Positions 4,304 through 41,847 of a stretch of DNA of 64,000 nt are shown here, piece by piece. The translations under genes and the position numbers were made by a program. A model generated the notes under the pieces. That model was not told where the DNA came from and did no database searches. It saw only the letters and a program-made list of their open reading frames with translations. Location of the stretch: sequence record OR413581.1. The stretch is one strand, 5' to 3'. Numbering within the stretch: the stretch's first letter is position 1; every line of letters begins with the position of its first letter.

Positions 4304-4331
4304 ATCGACCATTATCTTAAGGAGTTTTAAC

Positions 4332-11743: not shown

Positions 11744-11748
11744 GTGTA

Positions 11749-11773
11749 GGGGCTCTTCGGAGCCCCATCTTTT
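11749..11773 (+). terminator. rho-independent terminator
   Basis: GGGGCTC-TTCG-GAGCCCC-ATCTTTT. Confidence 0.75.
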
Positions 11774-11790
11774 GGCGATGCGGAGTCCCT

Positions 11791-25139: not shown

Positions 25140-25667
25140 ATGGCAGTCATCTCTGCAAAAGACCAACTCGTCGCGCTGTTTAATGCTGCAAACAGCGGAC
25201 TGTCTAGTCCGTTAACTTCTGCTGACGTTACATTCGGCGCTGTTGCTGACTATTCACCAGCAGATTCTGGAGACACTCGCAACTCCAAACTCACCATCAC
25301 TGCCACCGCGGAATCCGCTAACTTTACTGGCGAGAAAGAGCTGCATTATACCCGCCTCGATTCATCGAACATCATCGGTGCGAAAGCAGTTACCGCTGAC
25401 CAGGCAGAATGGGATACCGATGAAGAAGTGCTTGCTTTTGTCAACGCAGATCTAATTGCCGCCGGTAAAACGGAAGATGCGTTTGCATTGTCTGAACTCA
25501 CCATTTCACGCGAGGACGGCGACAGTGGTGAGAAAATCATCACTGTTATGGTGAAAGAAGGCCACATTAAATACCAGCCTGCCAGCCTTGCAGTTTATAC
25601 TGTAACGCAGCCAATCGTTAAAACTGACCTGAGCACCACTAACGGTGAACTGGACGGATTCGTTTAA
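25140..25667 (+). CDS. stand-alone family A structural protein
   Basis: TRNSKLTITA..FTGEKELHYTR; ends LSTTNGELDGFV; AAGGA RBS. Confidence 0.8.
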   Translation: MAVISAKDQLVALFNAANSGLSSPLTSADVTFGAVADYSPADSGDTRNSKLTITATAESANFTGEKELHYTRLDSSNIIGAKAVTADQAEWDTDEEVLAFVNADLIAAGKTEDAFALSELTISREDGDSGEKIITVMVKEGHIKYQPASLAVYTVTQPIVKTDLSTTNGELDGFV

Positions 25668-25707: not shown

Positions 25708-25745
25708 CCTACCTCCCTTCGGGGAGGTAGGGCCTTTATTTTCTT
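25708..25745. terminator. bidirectional terminator ending the - strand late operon
   Basis: CCTACCTCCC-TTCG-GGGAGGTAGG with A-rich and T-rich flanks. Confidence 0.85.
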
Positions 25746-25748
25746 TGC

Positions 25749-26420
25749 TTACATGCCGAGTGATTCGGACAATGTTTTTAATCCAGTGTAATCGCGCTTT
25801 TCAGCTAACTCACGGATTTGGCGTTTGTTATCTGCCATTGCTGAGTGCAACACTTGGTCACGTGCAACAATAGCGGCCAGCAACGCTTTACATTGGGCTA
25901 CTGTAAACGGACTGTGCTTAGTATTCAGCGTATCGAGCCAGTATTCTGGTGCGGTATCTGCCTGAATGTATTGACCGAGGATGGTACGCGACGATTCATC
26001 GGCTTGAAAGTGGCTACCTTCAAACTCGATATAACCATGGCGCTCATCTTCGTAGCGGTGGTCGAGTTCCAACAGCATTTTCTGCACGTCTTCGTAAATG
26101 TAACGTGCGGTAGATTTCAGATTCCCGCGAATTTCGTCGAGGTCAATCTCCAGCACATTAGCAATAAACTCTTTCGTGCGTTTCAATGTGAAGTTAGCTT
26201 CAATCTCCGACATCTCATACAGCTTCATGCGTGCCAGGGCTTCTTTATCAGACATCCCTTCGATGAGATGGTAATGGAGTAATGCACAAAATCCGGTACG
26301 GCCCTGATCCTGCGCACCGATTCGTTCCATGAAATTACCGTGACGATCAATCGGCAAATCACGCTGGAAATAACGGGCGCGGATCTCTTCGTTCGTTAAG
26401 CTTTTGTCAGTAACAGACAT
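25749..26420 (-). CDS. DUF4376-domain protein (tail-fibre associated)
   Basis: C-half GSHFQADESSR..YWLDTLN..F...CKALLAAI fits the DUF4376 pattern; GAGGAGG RBS. Confidence 0.65.
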   Translation of the reverse strand: MSVTDKSLTNEEIRARYFQRDLPIDRHGNFMERIGAQDQGRTGFCALLHYHLIEGMSDKEALARMKLYEMSEIEANFTLKRTKEFIANVLEIDLDEIRGNLKSTARYIYEDVQKMLLELDHRYEDERHGYIEFEGSHFQADESSRTILGQYIQADTAPEYWLDTLNTKHSPFTVAQCKALLAAIVARDQVLHSAMADNKRQIRELAEKRDYTGLKTLSESLGM

Positions 26421-26962
26421 TCGTCCTCCTCAATCAGGCCAAGTTCTAACAACAAACCGAAGTCCAGCATCTGGAAGTCCTGATCGAGGTTACCGGCCCA
26501 CAACAGAGAAATGTTGTGTTGCTCTTCTTCTTCCAACTGCGGGAGCAGGTGTTCTTCGAAGATTTGACGCTCTGTGTAATAAGCGTCAACCGGGTTATTG
26601 GAGCGTAAGTTACGAATACGCATCCGCGGGAATGACAAGCCCAACGCCACTAAACTTTCAGGACTGGCTTCATCAATAGAGTGACGTAGCAGTTCGATTT
26701 TGTGGCGTGGGTATGCAAGCAGTCGCTTCTCAAAGCCAGGGTTGCGCTTTTCGATTTCCGCGACAGACTCGTGTCCTTTCTCAACGCAGTAGACCGGGAT
26801 CATCACATTCAGCCCGTATTTAATCAACAGGCTTTGGATTTCATCAGTGAAGTCTTCCCCTGCCACAATTGCGTGCACATTGTACAGCTTGCTTTTGCGC
26901 AGGAAGCGATCGACCAAGTGCAGTTTACGCTTCGTAAAATTGTGAATCAGTATTGACTTCAT
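26396..26962 (-). CDS. hypothetical protein in the radical SAM cluster
   Basis: GGAG RBS before ATG 26962 (MKSILIHNF); overlaps both neighbours. Confidence 0.75.
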   Translation of the reverse strand: MKSILIHNFTKRKLHLVDRFLRKSKLYNVHAIVAGEDFTDEIQSLLIKYGLNVMIPVYCVEKGHESVAEIEKRNPGFEKRLLAYPRHKIELLRHSIDEASPESLVALGLSFPRMRIRNLRSNNPVDAYYTERQIFEEHLLPQLEEEEQHNISLLWAGNLDQDFQMLDFGLLLELGLIEEDECLLLTKA

Positions 26963-28253
26963 TCTGGGCTCCGTTTTGTAATTTTTCTGCTTCAGCACGT
27001 TGGCGTACACAACGTGAACAATAGCACATGGATTTATCATGCAAATCTGATGCGCGAGTCGTACCAGTTTTCTGATACCAATATTCCGCCGCCATCAGCT
27101 TCGCAGTAGTCCAACCACACTGACGACGCTCGGCGTGATACGCTTTACGGTCTTCCAGTGTACCTTCACCGTTTTCGTACGATGCTGCTGCGCAGCTACC
27201 GCAGCTGTGTTTCATCGGACACCCTAAACAGGTTTCTGGGTAGTTGGTGTACTGCGTTTGAATCTCTTCTAACAGCTTACCACCGTCCAGGCTCACAAAC
27301 TCACGACCGACCAGTTCCGCTACAGCAGAGCGGGAAGTTACCGTGGACATGAAACGGTTACAACCGTAAATCTTGCGATCAAAGCCGAGACAGGTCATGT
27401 GTGTCAACGTACCGCAGTACGGTTTCAGGCGTTCTGGGTCGAGACGAACAGAGTCGTCATGTAAGAGTTTGTCACGCCAATCCGGGTCCCAAGTTGCCAT
27501 AAAGTTCAGGCCATCCGGGATGATGTGTGTAATCGTGTTACGCGGGTTGGTGTGCAGACCCTTCTCAATCCAGTAGTCCATCACGTCCATCATCTGGTTC
27601 GCGATATCCAACGCCATATGGCGCGGCAGGATATCTTCGTACGTTACGTTACCAGAGATGGTACCACCGCCGGACATGTCAATTAACGATTTCATGCTGG
27701 CGGCATAGTGCGGCAATGTATCGATCGTAAACGTCGCCTTTACGCCCAGCTCAGCGATGCCAACACTCTTCAGATAATTGTAACCGCGTACCGCAGCTTC
27801 GTACGACCCTTCGCGCGTCGTGGTAAAGATACGATATTTGTCATGGACTTCAGGTAAACCATCGATGGAGACCCCAATAGACAGTTTGTCTTTCCAGCGC
27901 TCGATAATTTCTTTGTTCAGCGGACGGTCCAGAAGCGTACCGTTCGTGGAGATACTGAACATATACGGGCGATTGTGTTCTGCGCATAACTTCTCTGCGG
28001 TTTCAAAGGCCGCCAAAAGAAGTTTAGGCTGCATGAACGGCTCACCACCGATGATATCGATGATGACTTCAACATTCGGGATATCTTTATCACGCTCGAA
28101 ACAAGCGTGGATAAAATCAATCACGTCTGCTACTTTGTTGTTACGCGGATATTTACGCTCGTAGCAGTATTCGCAGTCCAGGTTACATGACAGGTTAGTC
28201 ACAACCTGATACGTGCGTGGTGTGTACTGGATTTGCTGTTCGCTATTACTCAT
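26925..28253 (-). CDS. radical SAM/SPASM peptide maturase, CXXX-repeat-target type
   Basis: CNLDCEYC, IIGGEPF, ISTNGT, SIDG..HD..R; SPASM cysteines YCG..C..GCNRF..CLGC..CGSC..C. Confidence 0.9.
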   Translation of the reverse strand: MSNSEQQIQYTPRTYQVVTNLSCNLDCEYCYERKYPRNNKVADVIDFIHACFERDKDIPNVEVIIDIIGGEPFMQPKLLLAAFETAEKLCAEHNRPYMFSISTNGTLLDRPLNKEIIERWKDKLSIGVSIDGLPEVHDKYRIFTTTREGSYEAAVRGYNYLKSVGIAELGVKATFTIDTLPHYAASMKSLIDMSGGGTISGNVTYEDILPRHMALDIANQMMDVMDYWIEKGLHTNPRNTITHIIPDGLNFMATWDPDWRDKLLHDDSVRLDPERLKPYCGTLTHMTCLGFDRKIYGCNRFMSTVTSRSAVAELVGREFVSLDGGKLLEEIQTQYTNYPETCLGCPMKHSCGSCAAASYENGEGTLEDRKAYHAERRQCGWTTAKLMAAEYWYQKTGTTRASDLHDKSMCYCSRCVRQRAEAEKLQNGAQNEVNTDSQFYEA

Positions 28254-29196
28254 TGTTCGCCGCCCGTTTACGCTTAGCAGAAATTACACGGTTGATGTAG
28301 TTATACGCATCAACGCCGATAGAACGCGCCAGGCGATTACAGCCGACTTCCAATATCTCTGGGGCGTTCTGAATTTGCTCCTGCGTACCGTCGGCGTTAA
28401 GCCACAGCACTTCACTGCACGTGTTGCACTCGGTATCGAACATTTTACTGATCGCGAGCCCACATTCAGAATCGTTCTGCATGTTAAGGCGTTCGATATT
28501 GTCGAGTATTTTCCAATACCCGTACATGAAGTTCATGACGTGGTCTGGCGATAACGGTTTCGGCATCATCGCATCAAACAACAACGACACACCACCTGGA
28601 CGGTAATGATAGATTGCTCGGTGCAGCTCGATGAAATCTTCGTACCAGCGTTTATCGCCTAACTGGTCACGCGTCATCACACCCCAGGTGTAATAGTTGT
28701 CCAGCTCGTACAGCACTTCCAGCGCTTCGTGATTACCACCGTTTACAAAGTTCATAAACGGACGTTCCGACTTCTTGTAGCCGTCAATGGACACAAAGAT
28801 AAGGTCGAACTGTTTCAGCAACGGCAGATGTGATTTACGCATCTTTAAACCGTTGGTGTACATGTGATGACGGAGGTTCGGATGAGACTCCTTCAGCTCG
28901 TTCACGAAGTCTTCAATCTTACGCTGCGCTAACAGCGGCTCACCGCCCGTCCAATGAATCTCACCGATATCCGGATTCTTCTCTAAAATCGAGAGAATCT
29001 CTTCACGTTGAAACTCACGAGAAGTATCTTCTCTATCCATGTAATAAGCCCCTCCACAGAAGCTACAGTCTAAGTTACACTTAGAAGTTGCGACAACCGA
29101 CAGAATTGACGGTTTGTCGTACAGTTCAGACGAGATCCTGGATTCTACTTGATCTGTCATTGCAGGTTGCTCCAGTATATTTTTAAATATAATCAA
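28246..29196 (-). CDS. second radical SAM protein
   Basis: CNLDCSFC, WTGGEPLL, YTNG, VSIDG; short C-terminal CNTC...C. Confidence 0.85.
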   Translation of the reverse strand: MIIFKNILEQPAMTDQVESRISSELYDKPSILSVVATSKCNLDCSFCGGAYYMDREDTSREFQREEILSILEKNPDIGEIHWTGGEPLLAQRKIEDFVNELKESHPNLRHHMYTNGLKMRKSHLPLLKQFDLIFVSIDGYKKSERPFMNFVNGGNHEALEVLYELDNYYTWGVMTRDQLGDKRWYEDFIELHRAIYHYRPGGVSLLFDAMMPKPLSPDHVMNFMYGYWKILDNIERLNMQNDSECGLAISKMFDTECNTCSEVLWLNADGTQEQIQNAPEILEVGCNRLARSIGVDAYNYINRVISAKRKRAANNE

Positions 29197-30070
29197 TGGC
29201 GAATAAAGGATCTTCGTCTACGTTAGCGCCAGGCACCAGTAACATCGGGTCGTGATAGGCAGCTAAAATTTTGTTCAGGTCGGCGTGTCTTTCGTTCAGA
29301 CGTTTCAAATCGGCCAACGTTACCGAACGACCACGAATCTCAGAAACAGCTTCTGCTTCTTCTTTCGTTAAATCCACCTTCGTTAAGAGGAAACTTACCA
29401 GCTTACTCAAATCCGCTTCTGTCGCCGGGTAATCCCCATATCGAGTTTGAACCAGGTGTTGCATCCACGGCTTACGAATACGTTTGGTGATTTCAAAATC
29501 GTCAGTCAGCGCATGCCAGACAGAACGCTTTTTATCCCACACGAACTTATAGCTATACGCCATCATGTCCGCTAAACGGGTGATGCCGAGTTCTTTATAC
29601 CCCTCGATATCGATGTATGGTTCGGTGTCGAAATACGTTTCCGTATCGGCAGGTACCAGTACAAAGTAGTAAGGGAAAGAGCCCAGATAGTCCGGACTCC
29701 ACCAACGGCGCGCCATTGGTTTTGCTTCAAGTTCGTCAAACGGTGTAAACATCAGCTCTAAATCGACGCTGTTGTTCAAAATCCCTTCACTGAAGAAATA
29801 CTTACCGTCGACTAACACGCCACGAGAGTTACCATCACCGTTAAAGATAACGATGGCCTCTGCAACCATATCACGGATCTTAAACGTATTTTCTACGGTG
29901 TAGTTCTTCTTGTCGGTCAAGAAGCGACCACGAACCTTTGGCCACTCACCAGGAATCTGTGCAATCAGTCTGACTTTGTCAGCGAGGTGTGCACGCACTG
30001 AATCTGGGGATGATAGATGCAGCGGGTGGTTGAATGTGGTTTTATACGCAAGATGCAAATCGTTTTTCAT
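29183..30070 (-). CDS. hypothetical protein in the radical SAM cluster, 295 aa
   Basis: GGAG RBS; overlaps the rSAM start by 14 nt. Confidence 0.8.
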   Translation of the reverse strand: MKNDLHLAYKTTFNHPLHLSSPDSVRAHLADKVRLIAQIPGEWPKVRGRFLTDKKNYTVENTFKIRDMVAEAIVIFNGDGNSRGVLVDGKYFFSEGILNNSVDLELMFTPFDELEAKPMARRWWSPDYLGSFPYYFVLVPADTETYFDTEPYIDIEGYKELGITRLADMMAYSYKFVWDKKRSVWHALTDDFEITKRIRKPWMQHLVQTRYGDYPATEADLSKLVSFLLTKVDLTKEEAEAVSEIRGRSVTLADLKRLNERHADLNKILAAYHDPMLLVPGANVDEDPLFAIDYI

Positions 30071-30092
30071 TTAATACTCCGAACGTTTTCTG

Positions 30093-30299
30093 TTATCGAT
30101 TCCCCGCTCCACGGCTACAGCTTCCGCTGCAGGACCAGCTACACCCACCATTACAGTTATAGTGAGAAAGCGGTAAACCAGCCAGGTTGTTCGTGGTCGA
30201 CACGGTGCCCTGGTTAGCGATGTAGTTGTTTGCCTGTGCGGTTGTAATGTAACCTTCTACCGTAACGAGACGGTTTCGAATAGTCTTGAGACTGATCAC
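30093..30299 (-). CDS. Cys-repeat precursor peptide 3 (68 aa, 4 Cys)
   Basis: GGAGG RBS, GTG start; leader homologous to peptides 1 and 2; HYNCNGGCSWSCSGSC. Confidence 0.8.
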   Translation of the reverse strand: MISLKTIRNRLVTVEGYITTAQANNYIANQGTVSTTNNLAGLPLSHYNCNGGCSWSCSGSCSRGAGNR

Positions 30300-30314
30300 A
30301 TAAGCCTCCGTCAG

Positions 30315-30719
30315 TTAGGAGTTAGGACCTGAACAACCACCAGAGCACGCACCTGAGCAGTTTGCGGAGCAGGATTTACCACAACCCCCAGAACAGCTGC
30401 CTGTGCACGTGCCGCTACAACCACCAGAGCACGAAGAGCTACAGCCCGTGCAGCTGCTGCTACAGCCTGATACACAGTTTGCCGAGCAAGTCGACCCACA
30501 ACCACCTGTCGCAGACCCTGTGCAGCCGCCAGAGCAACTTGAGCAGCTAAAAGAACACGTACCACCACAGTCGTAGTGCGAACGACCTTGACCTGCGAAC
30601 AAGTCAGCGTTATTCGTAGCTTTATTGCGAATGTAGTTTTGCACATTCGTGGTATTCTTTAGAGCGTTTGCATCGATCGTGTTTAATCGGTTATTCAGTT
30701 CTTTTAATCCAATTGCCAT
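30315..30719 (-). CDS. Cys-repeat precursor peptide 2 (134 aa, 20 Cys)
   Basis: 50-aa leader then CxxxC repeats flanked by S/G/T/A. Confidence 0.9.
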   Translation of the reverse strand: MAIGLKELNNRLNTIDANALKNTTNVQNYIRNKATNNADLFAGQGRSHYDCGGTCSFSCSSCSGGCTGSATGGCGSTCSANCVSGCSSSCTGCSSSCSGGCSGTCTGSCSGGCGKSCSANCSGACSGGCSGPNS

Positions 30720-30729
30720 TTAATCCCCC

Positions 30730-31122
30730 TTAGCGACCTGAACAGCCGCCGGAGCAGGCCCCGGAACAACTGGAAGAACATGAGCCACCGCAACCACCTG
30801 TGCAGTTACCGGTACAGCTACTACTGCAACCACCAGAACAACCAGAGCAACCAGAACAGTTACCGCCACACGTCGAAGAACAGCTACCGATACAAGAAGC
30901 AGAACAGCTTCCTGAACAGCTCGAACAGCCGTGCGAGCAACCGTTAGAGCATGTCCAAGAACATGTCCCGCCGCAATCTAGCTGTGCTTTCGTCCAACCC
31001 CCAAATCGGTCTGCCGCATTATGGGCTTTAGAGGCCACTTGCGCCTCGATGCGGGGGCCTGTCGCCATGTTAGCTTCGACTATCTGGACGCGGTTTCTGA
31101 CGTCTTTAATAGATATCGCCAT
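30730..31122 (-). CDS. Cys-repeat precursor peptide 1 (130 aa, 21 Cys)
   Basis: AAGGA RBS; 49-aa leader then CxxxC repeats. Confidence 0.9.
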   Translation of the reverse strand: MAISIKDVRNRVQIVEANMATGPRIEAQVASKAHNAADRFGGWTKAQLDCGGTCSWTCSNGCSHGCSSCSGSCSASCIGSCSSTCGGNCSGCSGCSGGCSSSCTGNCTGGCGGSCSSSCSGACSGGCSGR

Positions 31123-31187
31123 TACGCTTCCTTAAAAAGTAGAACGAGCGGACTATGTCCATAAACATAGTCCGGCTCGTAAACAAG

Positions 31188-32390
31188 TTACTTAGTACCC
31201 GCTTCAGCTTGAACATCGTCGCGCGAGGTGAGGTTGTTGTTGACGTGAACAGCAGCCTGCACAACACCGCCATACTGTTTATGGAGGTAATTCGGGTGTG
31301 GGTTATCCGCAGCCGCATGGTTCGCCAGATTCTGGTTTGCCTGCGAAATTGCGTTGGTGTTGTTTATAACCTGAGTTTTAAGACTGTTGATTTGTCCTTG
31401 CAGGTTATCAATTTGCTGTTGGAAGTCCTTGCCCTGATTCTCAAGATCCGTGACGCGCTGATTTGTTTCATTCAGTGCAGACTGCAGATCGTTAACCATC
31501 TTCTGTAATTGCAACACCAGAGAATTAAGGTTAGCTAATGCTAACGACATTTTCTGGTAATTTTGAGCAACCACATTAAGCTGGTCGTTCCACGCGGCTA
31601 ACGAAGCCACAATTGCATCGATGCGTTTCCCCAACGCCGTGTCTGCTGCTCTTAAGTCGCCGATATCTTTGATAGTGGCGTCAATGGCAGTCTGTACACT
31701 TTGAATCAGAGCACGAATCTCCGTCTCCGTCAGGCCATTAACCTGATGAATGTCGAGATTGTGTACGTTACCTTCGGCGTTGATGTGGGTATTTAAGGCG
31801 TCGAGGAAGTCGTTTTTCAGACCGTCCAGAATACCTTTAATTTCTTCCAGCTGTACTGCAGAGCCGGAGTTAATCGCATCTTTAATCCCCGCGAGTACGG
31901 TAATGATATACTCAAAACCGTAGATATCGCCAAGGTCTTTATACGTCGGGGCGGACGGGAACGTATCGGGTACGTTTCGAAGATCCTTGAAGTCCACCAC
32001 ACGGTCTTCAATTTTCAACGACGCAATCGCTTGTCGGATGCCTTCGACGTTCGCAGACTGAAAACCACCAACGACTTGCGCAGAGACTTCGATATCAGTA
32101 GGAATGGCCGAGTTAGTTACCACCACACCCATGACCACTTCGCGGTTCTTGGTCATTTTCTGATATGCAGTATGTGCAAAAATCAGCTCGTAGTCTGTAC
32201 CACGTTTGTACGGGTAGACACCCGGTTTGTTCGCAGCCGCTAAGCGGAAAGTATCCGCGTAGAAAGCTCCGTCAGGAAATGCAAAAGCCCGGTTAACTTT
32301 ACCAGAACCTAACGTAATACGCCGCGTAACGGCGTTCGACGTTAATGTCCCGGTAAGGTCGAGCGGGTACTGATAAATGATTTCGGCCAT
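31188..32390 (-). CDS. tail-fibre-family protein with long C-terminal coiled coil
   Basis: AAGGAG RBS before ATG 32390; YQYPLDLTG, AFY..L..G.DY N-domain shared with upstream giants; heptads; HAAADNPH motif. Confidence 0.8.
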   Translation of the reverse strand: MAEIIYQYPLDLTGTLTSNAVTRRITLGSGKVNRAFAFPDGAFYADTFRLAAANKPGVYPYKRGTDYELIFAHTAYQKMTKNREVVMGVVVTNSAIPTDIEVSAQVVGGFQSANVEGIRQAIASLKIEDRVVDFKDLRNVPDTFPSAPTYKDLGDIYGFEYIITVLAGIKDAINSGSAVQLEEIKGILDGLKNDFLDALNTHINAEGNVHNLDIHQVNGLTETEIRALIQSVQTAIDATIKDIGDLRAADTALGKRIDAIVASLAAWNDQLNVVAQNYQKMSLALANLNSLVLQLQKMVNDLQSALNETNQRVTDLENQGKDFQQQIDNLQGQINSLKTQVINNTNAISQANQNLANHAAADNPHPNYLHKQYGGVVQAAVHVNNNLTSRDDVQAEAGTK

Positions 32391-32437
32391 TGCCAAACTC
32401 CTTTGATTGGGGCTTCCTTGCCCCATAGCGCTATCTG

Positions 32438-35400
32438 TTAGGTACGGAACATAAGATTGACCTGGATAACATTAGCCTGTTGCCATCCTCTCTCGTTCAC
32501 CCAATCGTGCGCAATCGTTAACGTAAGATCATCGCCATCCCACGCCACGATCGGTGGTGGGAATAAACCCTGAGCGCCCGTGGTAACAACCGGAATTGCA
32601 CCCGCCACATCCACAAACGTGTAGCTACGGCTGTTAAAAACAACTGGTGTGCCGTTGGTCTCTCCCGCCGCTGGTAAGATTTGAATCTTACTATCCGAAA
32701 GATCGGTGGTGATTGGTAGACCCCCAGCGTCCGTGAAAAGCCAAGAGCAAATATGCTGGTTAGCTGTTTCGAGCGCTGAAGAACTTACCGCCGCGACAAA
32801 TGTAAAGGTGCACGGCACGCCTGCTGGCAGAGAGTGCTGTTTGTGGTGCACGGTATGTGGTGACGGCAATAACACTTCTGGATTTTCGTCAATGTTAACA
32901 TCCGTACCTTCCGCCTCGACGTTGTAGAAAAAGCCATCCACAGCCTCCCATGGGGCAACGTGGACATTAAAGGTCGTTTCTACTCCCGGTGTACCTGGGA
33001 CGACGAATTTACTTTGCACCACCACCATCAGGTTTGTTGAGGTCGGAGAGAAAGCAGGCGTAGGGATACCTACCCACTCCATTCCCAACGATGCCGCTTC
33101 ACCGTTCTCATCGGCCGTTACCGTCGCAATTGTTGTAGGATGTTTCCAAAACGCCCCCGACTTGTTTGCCTGAGTAAACGCCGGCAAAGTTTTCAAGCCT
33201 TCGAAACGTTTGGAGACCATCGCTTTACCGCGACGCTGTGCGTCAGATACGGTATAAAGCAACTGACTATCCAGATAGCCTTTCGTAGCATCGATCGACA
33301 AAGGACCCATCGCTTCTTTACGCAATGGTGCCAGTCTGCCCGTTGCTGCATCCCTTCCCACTTCCACATCATGCTTATTCTCAACCGCCGCATGTTCCAA
33401 CAGTTGTTTCACCGCCCCCAATCGCTTAGCATGTTCGACGTTAGTCTCGACGACTCGCGACGTGCCCGTTTTAACATACCCGATATAGAGTTCCGTTTCA
33501 GTGTCTGGATGTCGAATCACGTCCATTACGTACTTCGGTGTACCATTTTCTACCTTGGCGTACAGGTAGAATGTCCGGTTCTGATGGTTTGTTGGAAATG
33601 CTGCGCTGAGGTCAATATACCACGTAGGCAGCCTATAAGTGCTCGAGCCGAAACGCAGGTCAACTTCCTCAGTCACATATACCAGCCAACCTTCGGCTGT
33701 TTCCACACCAGCAATGACGACCGATTCAGTCGGGCCACTAAAATTAGGAGCCGCGACAAAATCACTCGACGACATTGCGATACCACCACAATAGACGTAG
33801 TCGAGAGATGAGTTGTGTAGCATCACCTGATCACGATGAGCCAGATAAGCTGGGCTGACTGGAGTGTGGGATGGTGCCATGCGTCCAATGCCGTGTGGAG
33901 CAGAAGAACGCGTCCAGGTACCGTTAGACAGCGTAAGACCAACACCGTAGTTAAGCGCACCCAAGTCGCCAATTTGGCGCAAGGTTAACGTGTGTGGAAG
34001 ATACAACCCGAACTGAGTACCATCTACTGACACCAGTGTAGGTTGTCCCGGCCGGCGTGTTTTTCCTCCCGTTATCTCGCCCAACGTAGCATAGTTCAAG
34101 CCATAGTCGAGGTTGTTATAGAAGTCAAACAGTGCCAATATCGCTGCTGGGAATGTTACCTGCCCGTTGCTGATTGTTGGTTTCAGTGTAAAGTAGTAGA
34201 TATCCAACAAGTTAACATTGTTCACAGTACGCGTACATGCTACTTGTGCTAATGTAAGCGGCGTGGCTGTACCGATACCGATGAACCAAACGGAGAACAG
34301 TGCCTTTCCTGCGTTATTTGCGGCAAGAATATATTCCGAAGCATAACCATTCGCAGCGCCTGCCGGTGCTCCGTCGATGATCATCTGCTTCATCTTATCC
34401 CATTCAGCTTGTGACAGCGTCAATCGATCGGCATGAATCGTGAAAGTGCCGGAAACGTTGTGGTAAGGGAATGTTTCTGGTCCTGTGCAATACCAGCCGT
34501 TTAACTCTGTACCAGGCGACGTCGGTGTAACAATGTGGCACATCTGCGACAGATTCTCATACGTGAGAGAATCTACTAGACGACGATTGTTAGTTGGGCC
34601 ATACCCCGCCTTACCTGAGTAAGTGGTGTTCGGATCAAACTCAACTTCAATTGCCAAGCGGGTACGCGGCTGTGACAACCAGATAAGTCTGGAATTCGCT
34701 CCCAGAGTCAGCGGATACGCCATACCCAGCTCGTAGATAGAACCACGACCTTGGTTTAACATTACCGCACTAAAACTTCTGGCAGTGAAGTTGTAGTCGC
34801 ACGACAGGTACTCGTACCAACTCACACCGTCATCTAACGTTGTAATCGTGACATAAGGCATTAGGTCGCGATCGCCTGCATGTCCTTGCGAAACGATATA
34901 CTTGTCTTGCGATGTTGCAAAGGTTCGGTTATTAGCTTGACCTTCGCCCCATTTCCGGCTCGGAATCCCAATCTCAGCGCCACCGTTATAACGAACCGTG
35001 GTAAGATCGGCCACAATAGGGAATCGATCAGCACCTTCCAGCGTTATCGTCATTGAACTACAATCAACAACAAAGCTTGACACCCATTGTTTAAAGTTAA
35101 TAGTTTGCCCTGTAGTAGAAGCAAACCAAACCGTTGGAGTTAAACCAACACGAAAGTTCAGCCCATCCACACCAATCGCGTGATTACATTCCGGACCATG
35201 GACGAAATTTCGCGCACTATTCCACTTCGCCGATGCGTCTGCGTAGATTTGTGTTACTGGCGCTACCAACACATCTGTATCAGAACGTTTCTGACCCTGA
35301 CGCAAGTAGATATTATCTCCCGACGTTAACATCCCACCTGTTAACACATCCGCCACAAACGTGTTGCTACCACCCGGATTAAGTTCGTCGAGTGCGATGC

Positions 35401-37621
35401 TACGCATACTCACGAAATAGTCACCGGAGGTAAGCACAGTACGGAGCAGATAAACCCGCTCGTTGCAAACGATCAAATCGTTTGTTGATGGATCAACAAC
35501 CCATGGAGCGGTTGTAATCACACCGGCCGCGTTACCATTTCGGTAATCGCCCAACTGAACTTTAACAACACGATGATGTTTTGCATGGTCAATGGTGCCG
35601 TCAAAGATGACCAGGTAGTACGCACCGTCACTGCCTAAGCAGATCATTGCATCTGTACCGGTAATCACAATAGCAACCAGATTCACCCCAGGATACGCCG
35701 ACATTCCAGCGGGTCGATAACGTACGGACGTCTGCTGCATATTTTCCAGCGTATTGCTTGGCGACACATCAGCATAGGCGTAATAGATAGCCCAGTCACC
35801 TGGTGGATTTCCGTTAGAACCGTTACGGAGCGAGTAAACCTTACCAGACTCGTAACGCGCCAAACCTTTCTGCCAGGTTTGGTTTTTGGTATACCCTTCG
35901 TAGTTCCCCTGGACTGGTATAGGCAAGAAGTTATTGTTGCCGTACGATGATCCGCCGACAGTCCACGCCGGTAATAACGTAGCAATCTTGTCATTCAGCG
36001 TGTCAATCTTCTGTTCAAGCAAGAAACCTTGGCGCGAAGTGACCATCTTATCCGAGGTAGTGTCGATTGCATCCCACAGTTTAGCCAAACCTGTAACAGA
36101 CGTGGATGCGTACGGCACGTTATCGAGATCTGCAATGGTGTGGGTGTGCGTTGTAAGCGCTTTGCCTGATAGCACGGTACGCAATGCGTTAGTAACAGGC
36201 TTTTCTAACGGTCCGGTATTGTCCATTTTCTCAATACCGAAATCTGCCGCGGTTAAGGTCAGATGCATCTGCCCGTTTGAATCTATTACAAACCCTTTAC
36301 CATTGACCGTATACGTGTCGTCCACATATCCGTCGAGTTTGTTCTTCAAGTCAGTAACAGCTTTTTGGGAAATCGCTGTGGACGCTGCAGCGGATGCCGA
36401 GAGGTTAGTAATCGCAAACAAACCCTGCACAGTTGTGGTTGCTGCAGGCAGCTCCGCATTCATGTAAACTTTGTTTGTTTCTTTACCAGAGCCGTAAATC
36501 TTCAACGTGTCGCTGGACTTGAAGTAGGCGTTTGCTGGAAGTATCTTCACCGAGGTCAAGTACATCTTAACCATATCCGGTGTAACGAGATACACGCTGT
36601 TATACACAGGTGCAAGCACACCTGCATCATAAGCGCCCCACTTGTCACCTGCTTTACCCGAGTGAACCCAAAGCGTGTTCAGGCCAGCACTGAACTCCGT
36701 AGCGATACCCGGTTCGTTGTTATCCTGGTCAGATTTTAATACCAGCGGTTTTGTCGAGGTGATGATGAACTTCTCACCTTTCATGCTGATAACGTGACCA
36801 GACGTTGTTTGGAACGTAATCGCGTCGTTATTCAGAACACGCATACGGCCCAGTAAATCACCCAGGGTATTATCCAGAAGCATGTCAACGTGTTTCTGTT
36901 GGATACCGCTGGTAGACATTAGCGTCACTAACTCTGCCAGTGTACGTCCAAACGCTTTAGTCGCATCCACGGCCTTACCGAGCACAGGGAGTGCGCCAAT
37001 GTCACCGCAGGTGTAACCATGTGCATTTTTAATCAGGTGGTGTTGATACATTTCGTCATCAAACACCTGTTTACCGTTCTGATAAATCAAATCGGTAACT
37101 TCGGCAAATGCCTCATCCAGTTCGTGGGCGCGCTCTAAAATACCCAGACGGATATCTTCCAACGCCTTTACGATTTCATCGCGAAGAATCGCTTCTTCGA
37201 GATCTTTTGGCGGGTCGATTGGCGAGATAATCGGTGGATATTTCATCAGCTCAGACCAATCGCAGTTGCGCGGGTCTTTCATATCCGTCTTAACCAGATA
37301 CTTGCCGATTTCAGAAGCAGGGATGCGATACTGTCGACCAACCGACAACAACTCGTATTCTACCTCTGTGGCGTTCAGCAGCATTATGCTGCCGTATATT
37401 GCATCGTTCTCAGCCTCGGCTAATTCCTGGAAGTAATGTCCTAAGAAATAATCAAGACCTTCTATTAACTTGCGTTTGGTTCCGGTTGTTTTATCGGTAA
37501 CGGTTAACGTTAACCCGATGCGATAGAACGGTGCTTCGACGGGAATGACCGTCGAATAACGGTTCGGGTAAGTAGCGGTACTGAGGGTACCGTTAAACTG
37601 CGCCGCATCTTCTCTCGGCAT
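32438..37621 (-). CDS. giant tail fibre protein (~1727 aa)
   Basis: AGGAG RBS before ATG 37621; APFY..G.DY N-domain, H..T..D.GA, HTH motifs. Confidence 0.8.
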   Translation of the reverse strand: MPREDAAQFNGTLSTATYPNRYSTVIPVEAPFYRIGLTLTVTDKTTGTKRKLIEGLDYFLGHYFQELAEAENDAIYGSIMLLNATEVEYELLSVGRQYRIPASEIGKYLVKTDMKDPRNCDWSELMKYPPIISPIDPPKDLEEAILRDEIVKALEDIRLGILERAHELDEAFAEVTDLIYQNGKQVFDDEMYQHHLIKNAHGYTCGDIGALPVLGKAVDATKAFGRTLAELVTLMSTSGIQQKHVDMLLDNTLGDLLGRMRVLNNDAITFQTTSGHVISMKGEKFIITSTKPLVLKSDQDNNEPGIATEFSAGLNTLWVHSGKAGDKWGAYDAGVLAPVYNSVYLVTPDMVKMYLTSVKILPANAYFKSSDTLKIYGSGKETNKVYMNAELPAATTTVQGLFAITNLSASAAASTAISQKAVTDLKNKLDGYVDDTYTVNGKGFVIDSNGQMHLTLTAADFGIEKMDNTGPLEKPVTNALRTVLSGKALTTHTHTIADLDNVPYASTSVTGLAKLWDAIDTTSDKMVTSRQGFLLEQKIDTLNDKIATLLPAWTVGGSSYGNNNFLPIPVQGNYEGYTKNQTWQKGLARYESGKVYSLRNGSNGNPPGDWAIYYAYADVSPSNTLENMQQTSVRYRPAGMSAYPGVNLVAIVITGTDAMICLGSDGAYYLVIFDGTIDHAKHHRVVKVQLGDYRNGNAAGVITTAPWVVDPSTNDLIVCNERVYLLRTVLTSGDYFVSMRSIALDELNPGGSNTFVADVLTGGMLTSGDNIYLRQGQKRSDTDVLVAPVTQIYADASAKWNSARNFVHGPECNHAIGVDGLNFRVGLTPTVWFASTTGQTINFKQWVSSFVVDCSSMTITLEGADRFPIVADLTTVRYNGGAEIGIPSRKWGEGQANNRTFATSQDKYIVSQGHAGDRDLMPYVTITTLDDGVSWYEYLSCDYNFTARSFSAVMLNQGRGSIYELGMAYPLTLGANSRLIWLSQPRTRLAIEVEFDPNTTYSGKAGYGPTNNRRLVDSLTYENLSQMCHIVTPTSPGTELNGWYCTGPETFPYHNVSGTFTIHADRLTLSQAEWDKMKQMIIDGAPAGAANGYASEYILAANNAGKALFSVWFIGIGTATPLTLAQVACTRTVNNVNLLDIYYFTLKPTISNGQVTFPAAILALFDFYNNLDYGLNYATLGEITGGKTRRPGQPTLVSVDGTQFGLYLPHTLTLRQIGDLGALNYGVGLTLSNGTWTRSSAPHGIGRMAPSHTPVSPAYLAHRDQVMLHNSSLDYVYCGGIAMSSSDFVAAPNFSGPTESVVIAGVETAEGWLVYVTEEVDLRFGSSTYRLPTWYIDLSAAFPTNHQNRTFYLYAKVENGTPKYVMDVIRHPDTETELYIGYVKTGTSRVVETNVEHAKRLGAVKQLLEHAAVENKHDVEVGRDAATGRLAPLRKEAMGPLSIDATKGYLDSQLLYTVSDAQRRGKAMVSKRFEGLKTLPAFTQANKSGAFWKHPTTIATVTADENGEAASLGMEWVGIPTPAFSPTSTNLMVVVQSKFVVPGTPGVETTFNVHVAPWEAVDGFFYNVEAEGTDVNIDENPEVLLPSPHTVHHKQHSLPAGVPCTFTFVAAVSSSALETANQHICSWLFTDAGGLPITTDLSDSKIQILPAAGETNGTPVVFNSRSYTFVDVAGAIPVVTTGAQGLFPPPIVAWDGDDLTLTIAHDWVNERGWQQANVIQVNLMFRT

Positions 37622-37716
37622 TGCAAACACTCCTAATCTGTAATAAAACGGAGACCGCCCTCCCAATAACGGAAGGGCGGTTTACCTACGGACTACCCGC
37701 CCGTAGGCAGTCCGTC

Positions 37717-40700
37717 CTAAGAGGCCCACTCACCCGAGTTGTTGCCTTCGTTTCTACGTTCAGTATCCAACGTTTGTAAAATCCAATCCCATGTCCTGGT
37801 GGGGATGTGGAATGGATTACGCTTCTCAATGAGAATCGTCTCGCCACCAGTGCGAAGTTCCACCGGTGTCGTTTCAGTAATCACGAACATCGGATTACCA
37901 CTACTGCCCACGCCATTAATAGTGAACTTCGCTTGCAGCGGCGGCACAGAACCTTCCGGAGGCACGAACACGATGTGAATTGGCTGCATCGGTTTCGTGC
38001 GGGCAAGAGTCCCAGATATCTGAACAGCTGTTGTCGATGCACTGAAAGGTATAACATTACCCGGAATTTTCTCACTACCCACGATGATATATCCAGGGTA
38101 GTTAGAGAGCATTGTCCCATTTACCGACACAAAACGCTCATTTTGAGTTGGGCGATAAGCCCGCATAAAGCCGTACTTCCATTCACCACCGTTAGACGTA
38201 TAGTCTGCAGGAGCCGACTCAAGTAGCGGAGCACCACGTTTCTGCAGCCCTTTGTAAAACGGTGCGGGGAGTTTACCGTTCGGTGCAAGTTCCGGATAAC
38301 CCTCACTTGCAGCAGACATCGTGATGTATTCCGTAACCGGGTTATCGACGTTATCTCCAAAGTTCGCGAACGTGACGGTTGATATCGACATCTCCTCATG
38401 CCCAGAAGACTGGCTGTCTGGAGAACGCTCAATATACGACTCAAATAGTGAGCGTAGATAATGGAAACGATTTAAATCTACTTCTGTTGTGGAGGGGTCC
38501 ATCAAACCGTGGTTGATTGTGACGCCTTCACCAGTTTCGATGCCAGTAACACTAATCGATAAAGCGCCACCTTTAAAATAATCAATCGCGTCAAACGGAA
38601 CGTCGTATTCTATCTCACGAACAGTTGCCGAAGCCTGGCCACCTATCTTACTAATCGTCGATATTCGCAGTATCTGCGTATCAACAATATAGCGATAACG
38701 AATAAGCCAGCGCGAACCAATGGCTGCGAACTCGCTAGCGATTGAAACCGGGAGATAGTCTAAACAGTCAGGCGACTGAACATCCACGCTCTTGATTACA
38801 CGAGGAGCATCAACCAGCGTATTAGTAACGCTGGATTGTGTGCTGGCAATTCTTCCGGTTGGTTTATCGTACGGCGCGGCAATAAAGCCACAATTTAAAC
38901 TGGTCTTGGAGTTACTCCACCGCAGGACTCTGGTTTTACCTTTCTCATCAGCAGAAGGGGCCATGAAGTTTAATGAAACTTCGACGTCCGAGGTTTTTGG
39001 GACTTCAGGATAATCAGTGTCGATTACCACCGAACCCTCGAATGTCGCCATTCCGTTTTCTTTCGGGTTGCTTGGTGTAAACCAGCAATACGGGGACGCG
39101 TTTTCAGTGGAAACAACCGCCGCAAGAAGAATCCTAAGCGAGGTGGCACTTACGAATTTATAATCAAATAACCCACGATCTAAACGAACGAGGTTATCCC
39201 CAGAAACAGACGGGTTAGTTGGATACGCATACAGCCATTGTTTAGGTAATGGATCAACCTTATTCAACGGCAGCATTTTCGGGTTATCCGTCAACGACCA
39301 GTCGGTGTTACTCACCCCGTGTGCTAGACGTGTTTCGAAGTGCCGTTTAAGTTCGGACGCCATGCCGAAGTCAAACGTCGTTTCAAACTCGTAAGTCGTG
39401 CCTGCAACCAATCCCGCGTCAGGGACATCGATGTGGCCGATATAGCCGCGTTCCAAGTTAATACCTTCCGTGTCCACAATAGGTTCGGCGCGCGAATATA
39501 ACGCATCGGTTATCATGTTCACATAGAGGTAATGCCTTAAACCGTTCGGCGTCTTAACAAACTCCTGCAGGCGGGCAACTTTGGTGTTTTTATCCGAGGC
39601 CCCAACCGCAAAGTCACCGTCGTAAATTGTGAAACGAATTGCGGCTGCTTTAGCGCTATCGTTACATTCTGCACGGAATGCTAAGCAGTGTTGCTTCCAC
39701 CCCTCTTTGACAGTCGCCTCCAGATACCCCGCTTCTGTAATACCCGCACCGATAATTTCACCGTCCAGATAAACAGAAACAGCACCACCGCCACGAACCC
39801 AAATCCGCAGCTTACCAGAGTCGCAACGAACCCACGTTTTCGCCAAGAGGTTAACGACCGACAAATCACCCATTCCGGTTGTCGTTAAACCAATCTGCGC
39901 ACCGTAGTTCGTTTCCGGGACGGCAACCTCAAACCCACTAAAATCAATACCGGCACCGGTATTAATTACCGCGTTCTGCCACGTTCTTTCCATACGGTTA
40001 TCTGGAGAGAACCACTGGAACATCGGTGTGGTTTGCAGGTCTATCGAACCAGATACCGTCCCCTCTTTACGTGCACCATTTAACAGATAGAAATAATTCA
40101 AATCCGTTACGGCGAGGGTGGTACGTGTAGATCCCACAGTCCAAGTCTTACCACGCACAGCGGCAAAATCGGTCACGGAATCCTCTTTCGCGTTTGCTAG
40201 CGCAGCTGCAACTACGTCTAAACGTTTTGACAAATCGTTCAGAACGTTCGGGGTAACGCCGCGATTATCCGACAAGCCGTTTAGGTTGGTAGAATATCGA
40301 GCGGTACCGGGAACTGTTTGAGAAGCCGTTGGGATCTGTAAATCGGCGAAGTTGTGATGGTGACCTTTATCACTAAGACCGGTAACTGCTTCTGCCAACG
40401 CATCAGAAAGTGGTTTATCGACGTCAGCTGTGTTATCAGCCAAGTCCAGACCCAAATCCTTTTTCGTTAGCGTTCGGCTACCAGTGTCCATCGGCTGGTT
40501 ATTCAGCAGCGTTGTCTTCCTGACGTACGAAGACAGGTCACCCTCGTACGGTAAGAGCGAAGCTGGGGTGACTGCTTGTCCCTTGACTACATCGCTCGGC
40601 TTATCAGTCAGCGTCACAACGCCGGGTTCAGAGGTCGTCGCGGGTTTGGCTGTGACCTTCCCGGTGACGGGATCGGCTTTTGACCCTTTACCCGTGAAAG

Positions 40701-41847
40701 TAATGCCGTTCACCCCGCTAATGTACAGTTTGTTGTCATCCGGGTCAACGGTACCACCGCCGGTACCAGGGTCTTGTTGATAGCCCATGAGAGCAGTTGT
40801 GGTCAGTAACGTCGTACCATTAAGCGTCAGCTTATCCATCCCCAAGGCACTGCCAGTCGACTCAATACGTAATGTATTGATGCCTGCTTTCCACTCCATA
40901 AACCGGACGGTTCCAGTAGTGTCGGCATACCCACACGCCAACACAACAGAGCCATTAGATTTAAGAGTGAATGCCTCAGCAGAGAACACAATTTCGGATT
41001 CACCAGCAGGAGAACGGAACAGGGCACGAGTACCGGATATCGTCGCATTAAACACCCCTTTGGATTCTTTCGATACCCATTTAGAAATGTACTTGTCGAT
41101 ATCCGATTGTTGCAGACCCAGTGCACGGACCTCGCTGGTTAACTGACGCAACGTCTTTCCATACGCCAGGAAAGTATCTGGCGTTTTCAGGTTGACAGGA
41201 TGCGCACCGGCCTGCGCCGCGGTAGTCCCATGAGGGTTAGTCGACGCAATGTGTCCGGGGTAGTTAAATGCGGCGATTTCAGTTCCTAAGCCCAAAACCG
41301 CATCTTTCAGCTCAGTAAGCTTTTCACGAATCTGCTCGTTGGCCGCCCCGGCATCTAACTCCACATCATGCACTGCAGAGGCAACATACTTTTTATTCAG
41401 CATGTCTGACCAAGCTACCGCTGCAGGGGTGGCTGGGTACAGGGAGGGTCGATTACCTAAAAGCAGCCAATCTGCAGCCGTTGGGTTGTTGAGTGCCTTA
41501 ATTAGCTCATCCAACATCTCAATCAAACCACTGTAAAACGTACCCCCAAGCATCTGGCCTTCAAAGACCACCGCACCACGCAGTTTAGGGTTAATAAGAT
41601 GCACCCCGCAAAATACCGGGGTCGTCACCGAGTCGTCCAACGGTGTTAAAGCATACTCCAGCTCATAGTCCGTCCCGCGGGTAAGCGGTATGGACGAGCC
41701 GGCGAGCCTTACCACCAATCCTTCGAAAAACGGGCGATGATCTAGCATCACCACCCGATCGTTAGGATTGTCGGAGTCGATGATACGTTCCTCGATGAAG
41801 TGACACTCAGGATTTACACCCCGAGGATCGTAAGGATACGTTTTCAT
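37717..41847 (-). CDS. giant tail fibre protein (1376 aa)
   Basis: YPYDPRG..PFF..G.DY; HIASTNPHGTT; DNTAD.DKP.S; HHH motif; paralogue of neighbours. Confidence 0.8.
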   Translation of the reverse strand: MKTYPYDPRGVNPECHFIEERIIDSDNPNDRVVMLDHRPFFEGLVVRLAGSSIPLTRGTDYELEYALTPLDDSVTTPVFCGVHLINPKLRGAVVFEGQMLGGTFYSGLIEMLDELIKALNNPTAADWLLLGNRPSLYPATPAAVAWSDMLNKKYVASAVHDVELDAGAANEQIREKLTELKDAVLGLGTEIAAFNYPGHIASTNPHGTTAAQAGAHPVNLKTPDTFLAYGKTLRQLTSEVRALGLQQSDIDKYISKWVSKESKGVFNATISGTRALFRSPAGESEIVFSAEAFTLKSNGSVVLACGYADTTGTVRFMEWKAGINTLRIESTGSALGMDKLTLNGTTLLTTTALMGYQQDPGTGGGTVDPDDNKLYISGVNGITFTGKGSKADPVTGKVTAKPATTSEPGVVTLTDKPSDVVKGQAVTPASLLPYEGDLSSYVRKTTLLNNQPMDTGSRTLTKKDLGLDLADNTADVDKPLSDALAEAVTGLSDKGHHHNFADLQIPTASQTVPGTARYSTNLNGLSDNRGVTPNVLNDLSKRLDVVAAALANAKEDSVTDFAAVRGKTWTVGSTRTTLAVTDLNYFYLLNGARKEGTVSGSIDLQTTPMFQWFSPDNRMERTWQNAVINTGAGIDFSGFEVAVPETNYGAQIGLTTTGMGDLSVVNLLAKTWVRCDSGKLRIWVRGGGAVSVYLDGEIIGAGITEAGYLEATVKEGWKQHCLAFRAECNDSAKAAAIRFTIYDGDFAVGASDKNTKVARLQEFVKTPNGLRHYLYVNMITDALYSRAEPIVDTEGINLERGYIGHIDVPDAGLVAGTTYEFETTFDFGMASELKRHFETRLAHGVSNTDWSLTDNPKMLPLNKVDPLPKQWLYAYPTNPSVSGDNLVRLDRGLFDYKFVSATSLRILLAAVVSTENASPYCWFTPSNPKENGMATFEGSVVIDTDYPEVPKTSDVEVSLNFMAPSADEKGKTRVLRWSNSKTSLNCGFIAAPYDKPTGRIASTQSSVTNTLVDAPRVIKSVDVQSPDCLDYLPVSIASEFAAIGSRWLIRYRYIVDTQILRISTISKIGGQASATVREIEYDVPFDAIDYFKGGALSISVTGIETGEGVTINHGLMDPSTTEVDLNRFHYLRSLFESYIERSPDSQSSGHEEMSISTVTFANFGDNVDNPVTEYITMSAASEGYPELAPNGKLPAPFYKGLQKRGAPLLESAPADYTSNGGEWKYGFMRAYRPTQNERFVSVNGTMLSNYPGYIIVGSEKIPGNVIPFSASTTAVQISGTLARTKPMQPIHIVFVPPEGSVPPLQAKFTINGVGSSGNPMFVITETTPVELRTGGETILIEKRNPFHIPTRTWDWILQTLDTERRNEGNNSGEWAS

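Follow-up and report, generated by a model that had tools for sequence, protein, structure and literature searches.

The described system closest to the one treated here is the CXXX-repeat target/maturase pair (TIGR04114/TIGR04115; PF27846), a bioinformatic family that was defined by comparative genomics and in which tandem Cys-Xaa3 repeats of small residues are encoded beside a radical S-adenosylmethionine (SAM) enzyme of the SPASM type. The same arrangement is found in a stretch of 64,000 nucleotides (hereafter the window) of the Salmonella jumbo phage SPLA3 (OR413581.1), which belongs to the SPN3US group. Three small paralogous proteins, P1, P2 and P3, are encoded there directly 3' of the tail-fibre genes gp167-170 and are followed by a gp165-type protein and two radical-SAM enzymes, gp164 and gp163. 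Since 79 of 84 viral loci pair a Cys-run protein with a gp163-type enzyme, and the pairing is nearly absent beside more distant SPASM enzymes, P1-P3 are very likely substrates of gp163 and gp164. On balance, we favour the view that they are fibre-associated structural peptides, the Cys run of which is covalently cross-linked by the radical-SAM pair.

The window nevertheless differs from the CXXX system in two respects. Its scores lie under the curated cut-offs (125.6 bits against 350 for gp163 as TIGR04115; 19.6 against 20 for P1 as TIGR04114), and it adds a second radical-SAM enzyme, a gp165-type protein, three short paralogous targets and a tail-fibre operon. PapB and CteB share with gp163 a radical-SAM core and a 7-Cys SPASM domain, and their substrates are also rich in Cys. 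However, gp163 has no counterpart of the N-terminal recognition domain of CteB, and P1-P3 look like fibre modules, not like short secreted peptides. The acceptor in the ranthipeptide PapA is CX3D/E, whereas the cores of P1-P3 contain no Asp or Glu; neither an equivalog-level score, nor an acidic acceptor, nor the protease and exporter expected of a ranthipeptide or SCIFF system was found in the window. In the His-Xaa-Ser system (HxsB/HxsC), a SPASM enzyme and a smaller radical-SAM enzyme likewise stand beside a short-period repeat peptide. The matches are weak (75 bits for gp163 against HxsB, cut-off 370; 45 bits for gp164 against HxsC, cut-off 268), the repeat residues there are His and Ser instead of Cys, and that system has no phage context; the likeness is an analogy of layout only.

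For the fibre genes, the closest described structure is the fibre base of phiKZ, a hetero-hexamer with a six-helix bundle that is formed by the N-termini of gp131, gp133, gp134 and gp135 (PMC13250141). gp167, gp168 and their paralogues are homologues of these proteins. In contrast, the Cys-repeat cassette is specific to the group of SPN3US, PhiEaH2 and CR5. In the homologue table of PMC5105663, gp163-165 have entries for PhiEaH2 and CR5 and none for phiKZ; the cassette is therefore an addition to a phiKZ-type fibre operon.

The three proteins are encoded by the following open reading frames (ORFs), each with a ribosome-binding site (RBS):

30730-31122, minus strand: P1, 130 aa, 21 Cys; phrog_6085, E 1e-40
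30315-30719, minus strand: P2, a paralogue of 134 aa, 20 Cys; phrog_6085, E 3e-41
30093-30299, minus strand: P3, a short paralogue of 68 aa, 4 Cys, GTG start; phrog_6085, E 2.8e-25

A Shine-Dalgarno-like sequence lies 6-9 nt 5' of each gene (AAGGAAG for P1, AGGGGG for P2 and GGAGG for P3). An N-terminal part of about 48 residues (about 49 in P1) is common to the three proteins, and the first Cys is residue 49-51. A conserved F/L-G/A-G motif stands ahead of the junction, which reads LDCGGTCSWTCS in P1, YDCGGTCSFSCS in P2 and YNCNGGCSWSCS in P3; leaders and junction align across all three. The cores consist of Cys, Ser, Gly and Thr with a few Ala and Asn. In P1, 17 of the 20 gaps between Cys residues are CxxxC and 3 are CxxC, which gives the tandem Cys-Xaa3 repeats of small residues known from the CXXX system, and P2 has a single gap of 8 where Ala stands in for Cys. 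The codons of the repeat are varied: TGT and TGC are used 13 and 8 times in P1 and 10 times each in P2, and all six Ser codons are in use. Exact internal DNA repeats reach 17 nt at most, and Tandem Repeats Finder reported weak short arrays only. Because the codons are mixed and the exact DNA repeats short, the Cys repeat is maintained at the protein level. Recent slippage as the origin of the repeat was rejected on the same grounds and because synonymous sites are saturated between orthologues.

An earlier note, made from the letters of the window alone, had described three paralogous ORFs at these positions with 21, 20 and 4 Cys, a shared leader and junction, CxxxC spacing with occasional CxxC among small residues, an Ala at one expected Cys of P2, and varied codon usage that argued against recent slippage. 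All of these points hold on the minus strand, the paralogy being borne out by the single PHROG, phrog_6085, to which P1, P2 and P3 belong, and the codon argument by the selection data given below. The same note had called the Cys cores graded. The counts are correct, but the set really consists of two long forms and one short form, a layout that is kept across five genera.

phrog_6085, which has no assigned function, is the only PHROG matched by the three proteins. The TIGR04114 repeat model (cut-off 20 bits) gives 19.6 bits for P1, which narrowly misses it, 17.1 for P2 and 13.7 for P3, and is the sole NCBIfam family match of P1. P1-P3 have no Pfam family match and no PDB sequence match below E 0.3, metal-binding Cys-rich families included. 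With a Cys run defined as at least 5 Cys spaced 3-5 residues and at least 45% small residues, a six-frame scan of the window returned P1 and P2 alone. The AlphaFold2 monomer of P1, computed from an alignment of 16 rows, has a mean pLDDT (model confidence) of 40 and weak helices at residues 5-19 and 22-36; two N-terminal helices are thus only weakly predicted. A search of a collection of 5.8 billion proteins with the P1 leader (residues 1-60) gave no match, and the search needs shared 5-residue words; this requirement, together with the rare calling of the gene, is the likely explanation. P3 retrieved 15 homologues from the protein collection, every one named hypothetical. The idea that the leader is a fibre adaptor shared with other proteins was rejected, since a hidden Markov model (HMM) of the leader picks up no other gene of the window with that N-terminus.

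The enzymes and the accessory protein lie immediately downstream:

29183-30070, minus strand: gp165-type accessory protein, 295 aa, phrog_8030; a member of the cassette in the closest subclade
28246-29196, minus strand: gp164, small radical-SAM enzyme (CX3CX2C); the start in the public record is window position 29160
26925-28253, minus strand: gp163, radical-SAM/SPASM enzyme of the peptide-maturase type, 442 aa, identified by NCBIfam, structure match and motif

The best NCBIfam model for gp163 is the CXXX-repeat maturase TIGR04115, followed by PapB (113.6 bits, cut-off 340); the SCIFF maturase model gives 53.9 bits (cut-off 425). TIGR04115 scores of the 10 closest scanned relatives outside the clade are 125-181 bits. 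The closest solved structure is CteB, the SCIFF thioether synthase (5wgg, E 3e-10), which matches in the radical-SAM core only. The alignment begins at CteB residue 106, from which it follows that gp163 is without the N-terminal recognition domain of CteB. In gp163 and 31 relatives (27-47% identity), the CX3CX2C motif (C23, C27 and C30) and the seven SPASM Cys residues (C280, C298, C342, C345, C351, C354 and C379) are invariant. The only PADLOC result was a generic likeness of the radical-SAM core to viperins.

The radical-SAM motif is also present in gp164, which conserves up to three C-terminal Cys residues but is without a full SPASM domain. Its homologues accompany the SPASM enzyme in other phages. 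Relatives of gp163 of 634-668 aa also exist (P0062, P0067 and P0078), and P0062, which has two radical-SAM domains, seems to have arisen by fusion of the small enzyme with the SPASM enzyme. Such fused proteins argue for a functional link between the two enzymes. The P0062 gene is preceded by a 221-aa protein and a 570-aa protein with a faint precomputed PF27846 match. gp165 has 49 homologues, all from contigs of the jumbo-phage type, and its distant homologues hold the equivalent position in lambda-like, phage-P2-like and other phages (12 loci). The 12 loci with a gp165-type protein form a subclade of the closest relatives; small radical-SAM enzymes were also found in 12 loci, 10 of which are shared with this subclade. 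Although the structure model of gp165 is confident (pLDDT 90.5), it has no fold match in the PDB (best E 0.12), BFVD returned orthologues only, and no PDB sequence-profile match was obtained. Because of these results, a role of gp165 as a peptide-recognition protein similar to a RiPP recognition element (RiPP, ribosomally synthesised and post-translationally modified peptide) is unsupported.

The enzyme-substrate relation was analysed across viral loci. Relatives of gp163 were found on at least 164 viral contigs of IMG/VR, and cellular genomes contain at least 432; of the 84 viral loci scanned, 79 have a Cys-run ORF on the same strand beside the gp163-type enzyme, so that target and maturase are encoded side by side as in the CXXX system. 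In these loci, 81 Cys-run ORFs share the strand of the enzyme and 2 lie opposite to it, a comparison that is helped by the mostly co-directional genes in the loci; the control with cellular genomes is the stronger one. There, beside more distant SPASM enzymes, a Cys-run ORF was found in 9 of 80 loci, and 7 of these 9 fall among the 13 best matches. The genome scan relied on one peptide pattern, and HMM profiles served only to search the loci. In 65 loci the Cys-run ORF nearest to the enzyme is upstream of it, against 11 where it is downstream, and the median distance is about 1 kb. The number of Cys in the 81 distinct proteins with such a run is 9-126 (median 31). In this family CxxxC makes up 83% and CxxC 15% of the gaps, the same spacing as in P1 and P2, and about 26% of the residues of the runs are Cys, with small residues between them. 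The run is C-terminal in 65 of the 81 proteins, N-terminal with a following domain in 6 and internal in 3. PF27846 is recorded on Cys-run proteins beside gp163 relatives.

Two observations from the same set may be added. Three loci (L096, L097 and L098) come from metagenome-assembled genomes of uncultured termite-gut bacteria (Margulisiibacteriota and Termititenax). Upstream of their gp163-like enzymes are genes for proteins of 667-672 aa, in which CXXX-type runs hold 112-122 Cys. On a gut-phage contig (L025), a reverse-transcriptase gene (phrog_1423, 11604-12881) lies a few kb 3' of a 62-Cys protein and a radical-SAM enzyme, and could belong to a diversity-generating retroelement acting on the tail module.

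Among the closest relatives, which are lambda-like, phage-P2-like and jumbo phages, the Cys-run protein is a recognisable tail fibre, and the genes beside it encode J, baseplate-wedge or tail-fibre proteins. The nature of the Cys-run proteins is clearest in phages outside the jumbo-phage clade. The nearest gp163 relative there (36% identity) is encoded on a siphovirus-like contig (L009). There the gene of the central tail-fibre protein J is followed by two genes with no annotation and by that of a 273-aa protein; a gp165 homologue (E 6e-6 over the full length), a gp164 homologue (E 4e-13) and the SPASM enzyme come next. The 273-aa protein has typical fibre repeats followed by a terminal Cys run (...SYYRCTGCTWTC...). 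In a prophage (L011/L012), J is followed by a protein of 296 aa that ends in a Cys-rich stretch, then by a 252-aa protein and three radical-SAM genes. In L018, J is followed by a 482-aa protein with a Cys-rich end and many tail-fibre PHROG matches, a phrog_8030 protein and the SPASM enzyme. In L021, baseplate genes of the phage-P2 type are followed by a 401-aa protein, a small radical-SAM enzyme, an unassigned gene, the SPASM enzyme and the tail sheath. This 401-aa protein matches tail-fibre PHROGs in its N-terminal part and phrog_6085 at residues 270-357, with the junction YYRCANGCSWTCS, and residues 5-118 of P2, leader included, align to its residues 243-399 (E 1e-9). Homology of P1-P3 to recognised tail-fibre proteins is therefore established through the L021 protein. 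It is indirect, because their own PHROG match is phrog_6085 alone.

The run is not always terminal. In L015, two adjacent Cys-run proteins (2955-3638 and 3652-4620) are encoded ahead of a gp163-like enzyme, one with an internal run and a 114-aa domain after it and the other with 62 Cys, and a C39 peptidase gene lies downstream. In the wider set, the upstream neighbours that were tested are tail-fibre or J proteins in 4 of 10 cases by PHROG labels, which are annotations and not experiments, and an amidase-domain protein in 1 of 10; the rest are unannotated. One of the four fibre or J neighbours also matches phrog_2163, the PHROG of gp167. Some surroundings of these loci were recorded as well. 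L011/L012 is a temperate phage or prophage with an adjacent integrase, ParE-toxin and holin/endolysin genes nearby and a host gene of the pantoate-transferase family (PF02548) at the contig end. In L015, a gene with a faint PAAR match lies just upstream, and a gene with a methyl-accepting-chemotaxis domain further upstream.

These alignments suggest that P1-P3 are probably stand-alone copies of a C-terminal fibre module found in many unrelated phages. The module would consist of a short helical or fibre-shaft segment, a junction (HYDC-GGTCS-F/W-SCS in the window) and Cys at every fourth residue with Gly, Ser or Thr between. As to the N-terminus, the earlier note had proposed either a maturase-recognition helix or a coil associated with a fibre; the alignment of P2 with the L021 protein and the fibre-fused Cys runs favour the latter. 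That the adjacent radical-SAM enzymes act on P1-P3 is very likely. The term "precursor" used in that note is doubtful when it is taken to mean a peptide with a cleaved leader, because Cys runs end tail fibres or lie inside larger proteins and the P2 leader aligns within a fibre protein.

Conservation was analysed in nine related phages, which represent five genera. In none of the nine is the Cys frame interrupted. The number of Cys is 21 in every P1, 20-23 in P2 and 2-4 in P3. In the P1 core, the Cys columns are invariant in 21 of 21 cases, against 13 of 57 ungapped non-Cys columns; these column statistics rest on the alignment of a repeat, whereas the equal Cys counts and identical spacing strings are independent of it. 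Synonymous differences are saturated (pS, the proportion of synonymous differences, 0.45-0.97) and non-synonymous differences are low (0.02-0.30), in leader and core alike. The Ala-for-Cys replacement in P2 is lineage-specific, with Ala in Seoulvirus and Machinavirus and Cys in Derbicus, Phobos, CR5 and Wellington. As each paralogue has conserved N-terminal features of its own, the triplication is older than the five genera. Judged by these comparisons, P1-P3 are real, presumably late genes of the tail-fibre operon, and they are under strong purifying selection.

The surroundings of the genes are conserved as well. On the minus strand, the fibre genes gp170-gp167 are followed by P1, P2, P3, gp165, gp164, gp163, gp162, gp161 and a terminator, and the same order with three paralogues is present in Huxley, Derbicus, Wellington, Phobos, CR5 and two uncultured viral genomes. 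The cassette sits inside the fibre operon in five phage genera. In the window cassette, Pfam, NCBIfam and PHROG scans of the neighbouring genes revealed no protease, exporter or immunity gene. A structural, fibre-associated role is therefore the more probable one for P1-P3, as opposed to that of a released peptide, in view of the module architecture and of this location.

Phage particles assemble in the reducing cytoplasm, and disulfide bonds cannot form there. Enzyme-made S-C cross-links would therefore be useful. In the proposed mechanism, gp163 would abstract a hydrogen atom in the reducing cytoplasm and link the Cys sulfur to a nearby carbon, in a thioether-type reaction like those of PapB and CteB. 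That the chemistry is thioether formation is a tentative assignment made by analogy with these enzymes. gp164 and gp165 would assist gp163, which has no N-terminal peptide-recognition domain itself. The flexible Cys run would thereby become a covalently stapled rod or knot that resists reduction and protease. The N-terminal part of about 48 residues would not be a disposable leader; it would serve as an anchor, either on the gp167-170 fibre complex or between the peptides themselves. A putative heteromer of the three chains is conceivable, though we regard it as rather unlikely. The end product would be a stabilised fibre tip or fibre-associated element for host adsorption.

Several points weigh against the cross-linked, fibre-associated reading. 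gp163 scores far under the curated cut-offs for both TIGR04115 and PapB, and the cores are without the Asp/Glu acceptors that PapB uses. In the literature searched, no member of the CXXX-repeat family has a demonstrated chemistry, and no paper ties the family to the tail fibres of phages. With its low pLDDT, the AlphaFold model of P1 is uninformative. P3, with 2-4 Cys, is a poor fit to a simple rod. Half of the neighbour genes tested in the wider viral set are without annotated function. Many small genes located behind fibre genes code for assembly chaperones, which are not retained in the virion. P1-P3 are also unreported in the SPN3US virion: the supplements of two published SPN3US studies do not list them and do not give the virion status of gp161-165. 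Since the genes were missed or miscalled, proteomic searches could not have found the proteins, and their absence from the proteomics annotation carries no weight either way.

Among the alternative explanations, the one that survives best is a transient assembly factor, although we consider it improbable. P1-P3 would then act as a trimerisation or registration clamp for the folding of gp167-170, much like the intramolecular chaperone domains or separate assembly proteins known from other tail fibres, and would afterwards be removed or left behind, so that the virion lacks them. They are encoded right after the fibre genes, the usual place of fibre-assembly genes, and a DUF4376 gene closes the cassette. 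Furthermore, the run is C-terminal in 65 of the 81 relatives, and intramolecular chaperone domains of fibres sit at the C-terminus. However, enzymatic modification by three proteins seems costly for a disposable segment, the count of exactly 21 Cys in P1 of nine phages suggests a defined final structure, and the run in L015 is internal. The results presented here do not separate this explanation from the fibre-associated structural reading.

It is somewhat less probable that P1-P3 constitute a classical RiPP system, in which the 48-residue leader guides the radical-SAM enzymes and is cut off, and the cross-linked cores are freed at lysis as antibacterial or signalling peptides. The size of the peptides, the common leader with variable cores and the two adjacent radical-SAM enzymes of the peptide-maturase type would fit such a system, as would the conserved F/L-G/A-G motif ahead of the junction and the C39 peptidase gene near the Cys-run genes of the distant relative L015. 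The window cassette itself, however, has no protease, exporter or immunity gene and lies within the fibre operon in five genera. The whole P2 leader aligns to an internal segment of the L021 fibre protein, and the runs of relatives are fused to recognisable tail fibres or are internal. Purifying selection on the leader is as strong as on the core, and each paralogue has conserved features of its own; these facts, too, speak against a leader that is merely cut off.

Binding of metal or Fe-S clusters would offer another use for the Cys residues. The runs, about 26% Cys with small residues between, might be metallothionein-like or form a metal-thiolate spine in a trimeric fibre, with no cross-link and with the radical-SAM enzymes acting elsewhere; phage fibre tips do bind metal ions along their axis. 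We consider this quite unlikely. The near-obligate pairing with one SPASM subfamily, and not with others, points to a relation of enzyme and substrate, the strict period of four is unlike the CxC and CC of metallothioneins, and neither Pfam nor the PDB gave a match to metal-binding families. Finally, the proposal that repetitive, G+C-rich DNA gives rise to these ORFs as artefacts and that the real gene is an antisense or alternative-frame ORF, as several records annotate here, is effectively refuted by the open Cys frame, the RBS and the saturated synonymous against low non-synonymous change in nine phages, by the PHROG and NCBIfam profiles that match the Cys frame, and by the conflict of the alternative annotations with each other in frame and strand.

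The remaining features of the minus-strand unit and its boundaries are:

41860-45573 and 37717-41847, minus strand: two more large paralogous genes, upstream of gp168
32438-37666, minus strand: gp168, tail-fibre protein of the phiKZ gp131 family, called a tail or tail-fibre protein in PMC5105663 and PMC7411985
31188-32426, minus strand: gp167, virion structural protein with a C-terminal coiled coil, phrog_2163; homologue of phiKZ gp134 (fibre-base paralogue), paired with phiKZ ORF134 in the supplement of PMC5105663
31144-31180, minus strand: RNA hairpin followed by a U-rich stretch, between the gp167 stop codon and the P1 RBS; -25.7 kcal/mol, z -3.7
26396-27040, minus strand: gp162 (phrog_7988), function not assigned; the start in the public record is window position 26962
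25749-26420, minus strand: gp161, DUF4376 protein, last gene of the unit; PF14301, E 1.4e-9; phrog_8169
25708-25731, no strand assigned: bidirectional terminator-like hairpin that closes the minus-strand unit; perfect 10-bp stem with 7 GC pairs

gp167 adjoins P1 on its upstream side. The hairpin between them occurs at the same site in five relatives, L003 (about 5946-5977), L004, L005, L008 and L017, where the structure is kept and the stem sequences differ. It may be a partial terminator or a stability element that sets the expression ratio of fibre to Cys peptide. At the other end, gp162 is a conserved member of the cassette within the jumbo-phage clade and holds the same position in every relative examined, and gp161 has a weak match to phrog_2837, annotated as "tail protein". 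The hairpin at 25708-25731 is flanked by T-runs on either side and lies between the convergent gp161 (minus strand) and an ORF at 25140-25667 (plus strand).

Window DNA at 26000-32500 is 100% identical to that of SPLA3 and about 98% identical to that of SPN3US, the type giant phage of the genus Seoulvirus, and Erwinia and Cronobacter jumbo phages are further, more distant DNA matches. The annotation of this region is inconsistent among these phages. The SPLA3 GenBank record has nothing annotated between gp165 and gp167, and gp166 of SPN3US is an out-of-frame ORF over P2 (window 30311-30646, minus strand). ORFs over P1 and P2 are annotated in antisense in Huxley and Phobos, and on the same strand in another frame in Derbicus. 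Wellington has another same-strand frame over P1, and its P2 is in frame with a later start. P3 is correctly annotated in Huxley, Phobos, Derbicus, Wellington and CR5. The loci with spurious ORFs over the Cys-repeat DNA are L001, L003, L004 and L006. Since the composition of the repeat keeps long frames open on both strands, gene callers are misled, and most records either overlook genes of the P1-P3 type or place them in a wrong frame or on the wrong strand, which amounts to a systematic failure of gene calling. The SPFM records (e.g. SPFM1, 6, 8, 10, 14 and 20) present a separate case: cassette genes match in short pieces of lower identity in phages that are otherwise near-identical, and this looks like a problem of sequence quality in the assemblies, not biology.

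With P1-P3, the annotation of SPN3US-type phages would gain three conserved genes; these phages serve as model giant phages and have been proposed for biocontrol. If the preferred reading of P1-P3 as cross-linked, fibre-associated peptides is true, an enzyme-made ladder of thioether or similar bonds would be a new way of hardening the host-recognition apparatus, and a post-translational chemistry not described before would exist in the adsorption organelles of phages. Radical-SAM cross-linking of the Cys-repeat end modules of fibres may even be a widespread form of virion-protein maturation, in jumbo, phage-P2-like, lambda-like and many gut phages, although we put this forward with reserve. 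With the same reserve, this would be the first biological role assigned to the orphan CXXX-repeat/TIGR04115 family, a radical-SAM family so far defined by bioinformatics. The TIGR04115-type family would then shift from the maturation of natural-product precursors to the modification of structural proteins.

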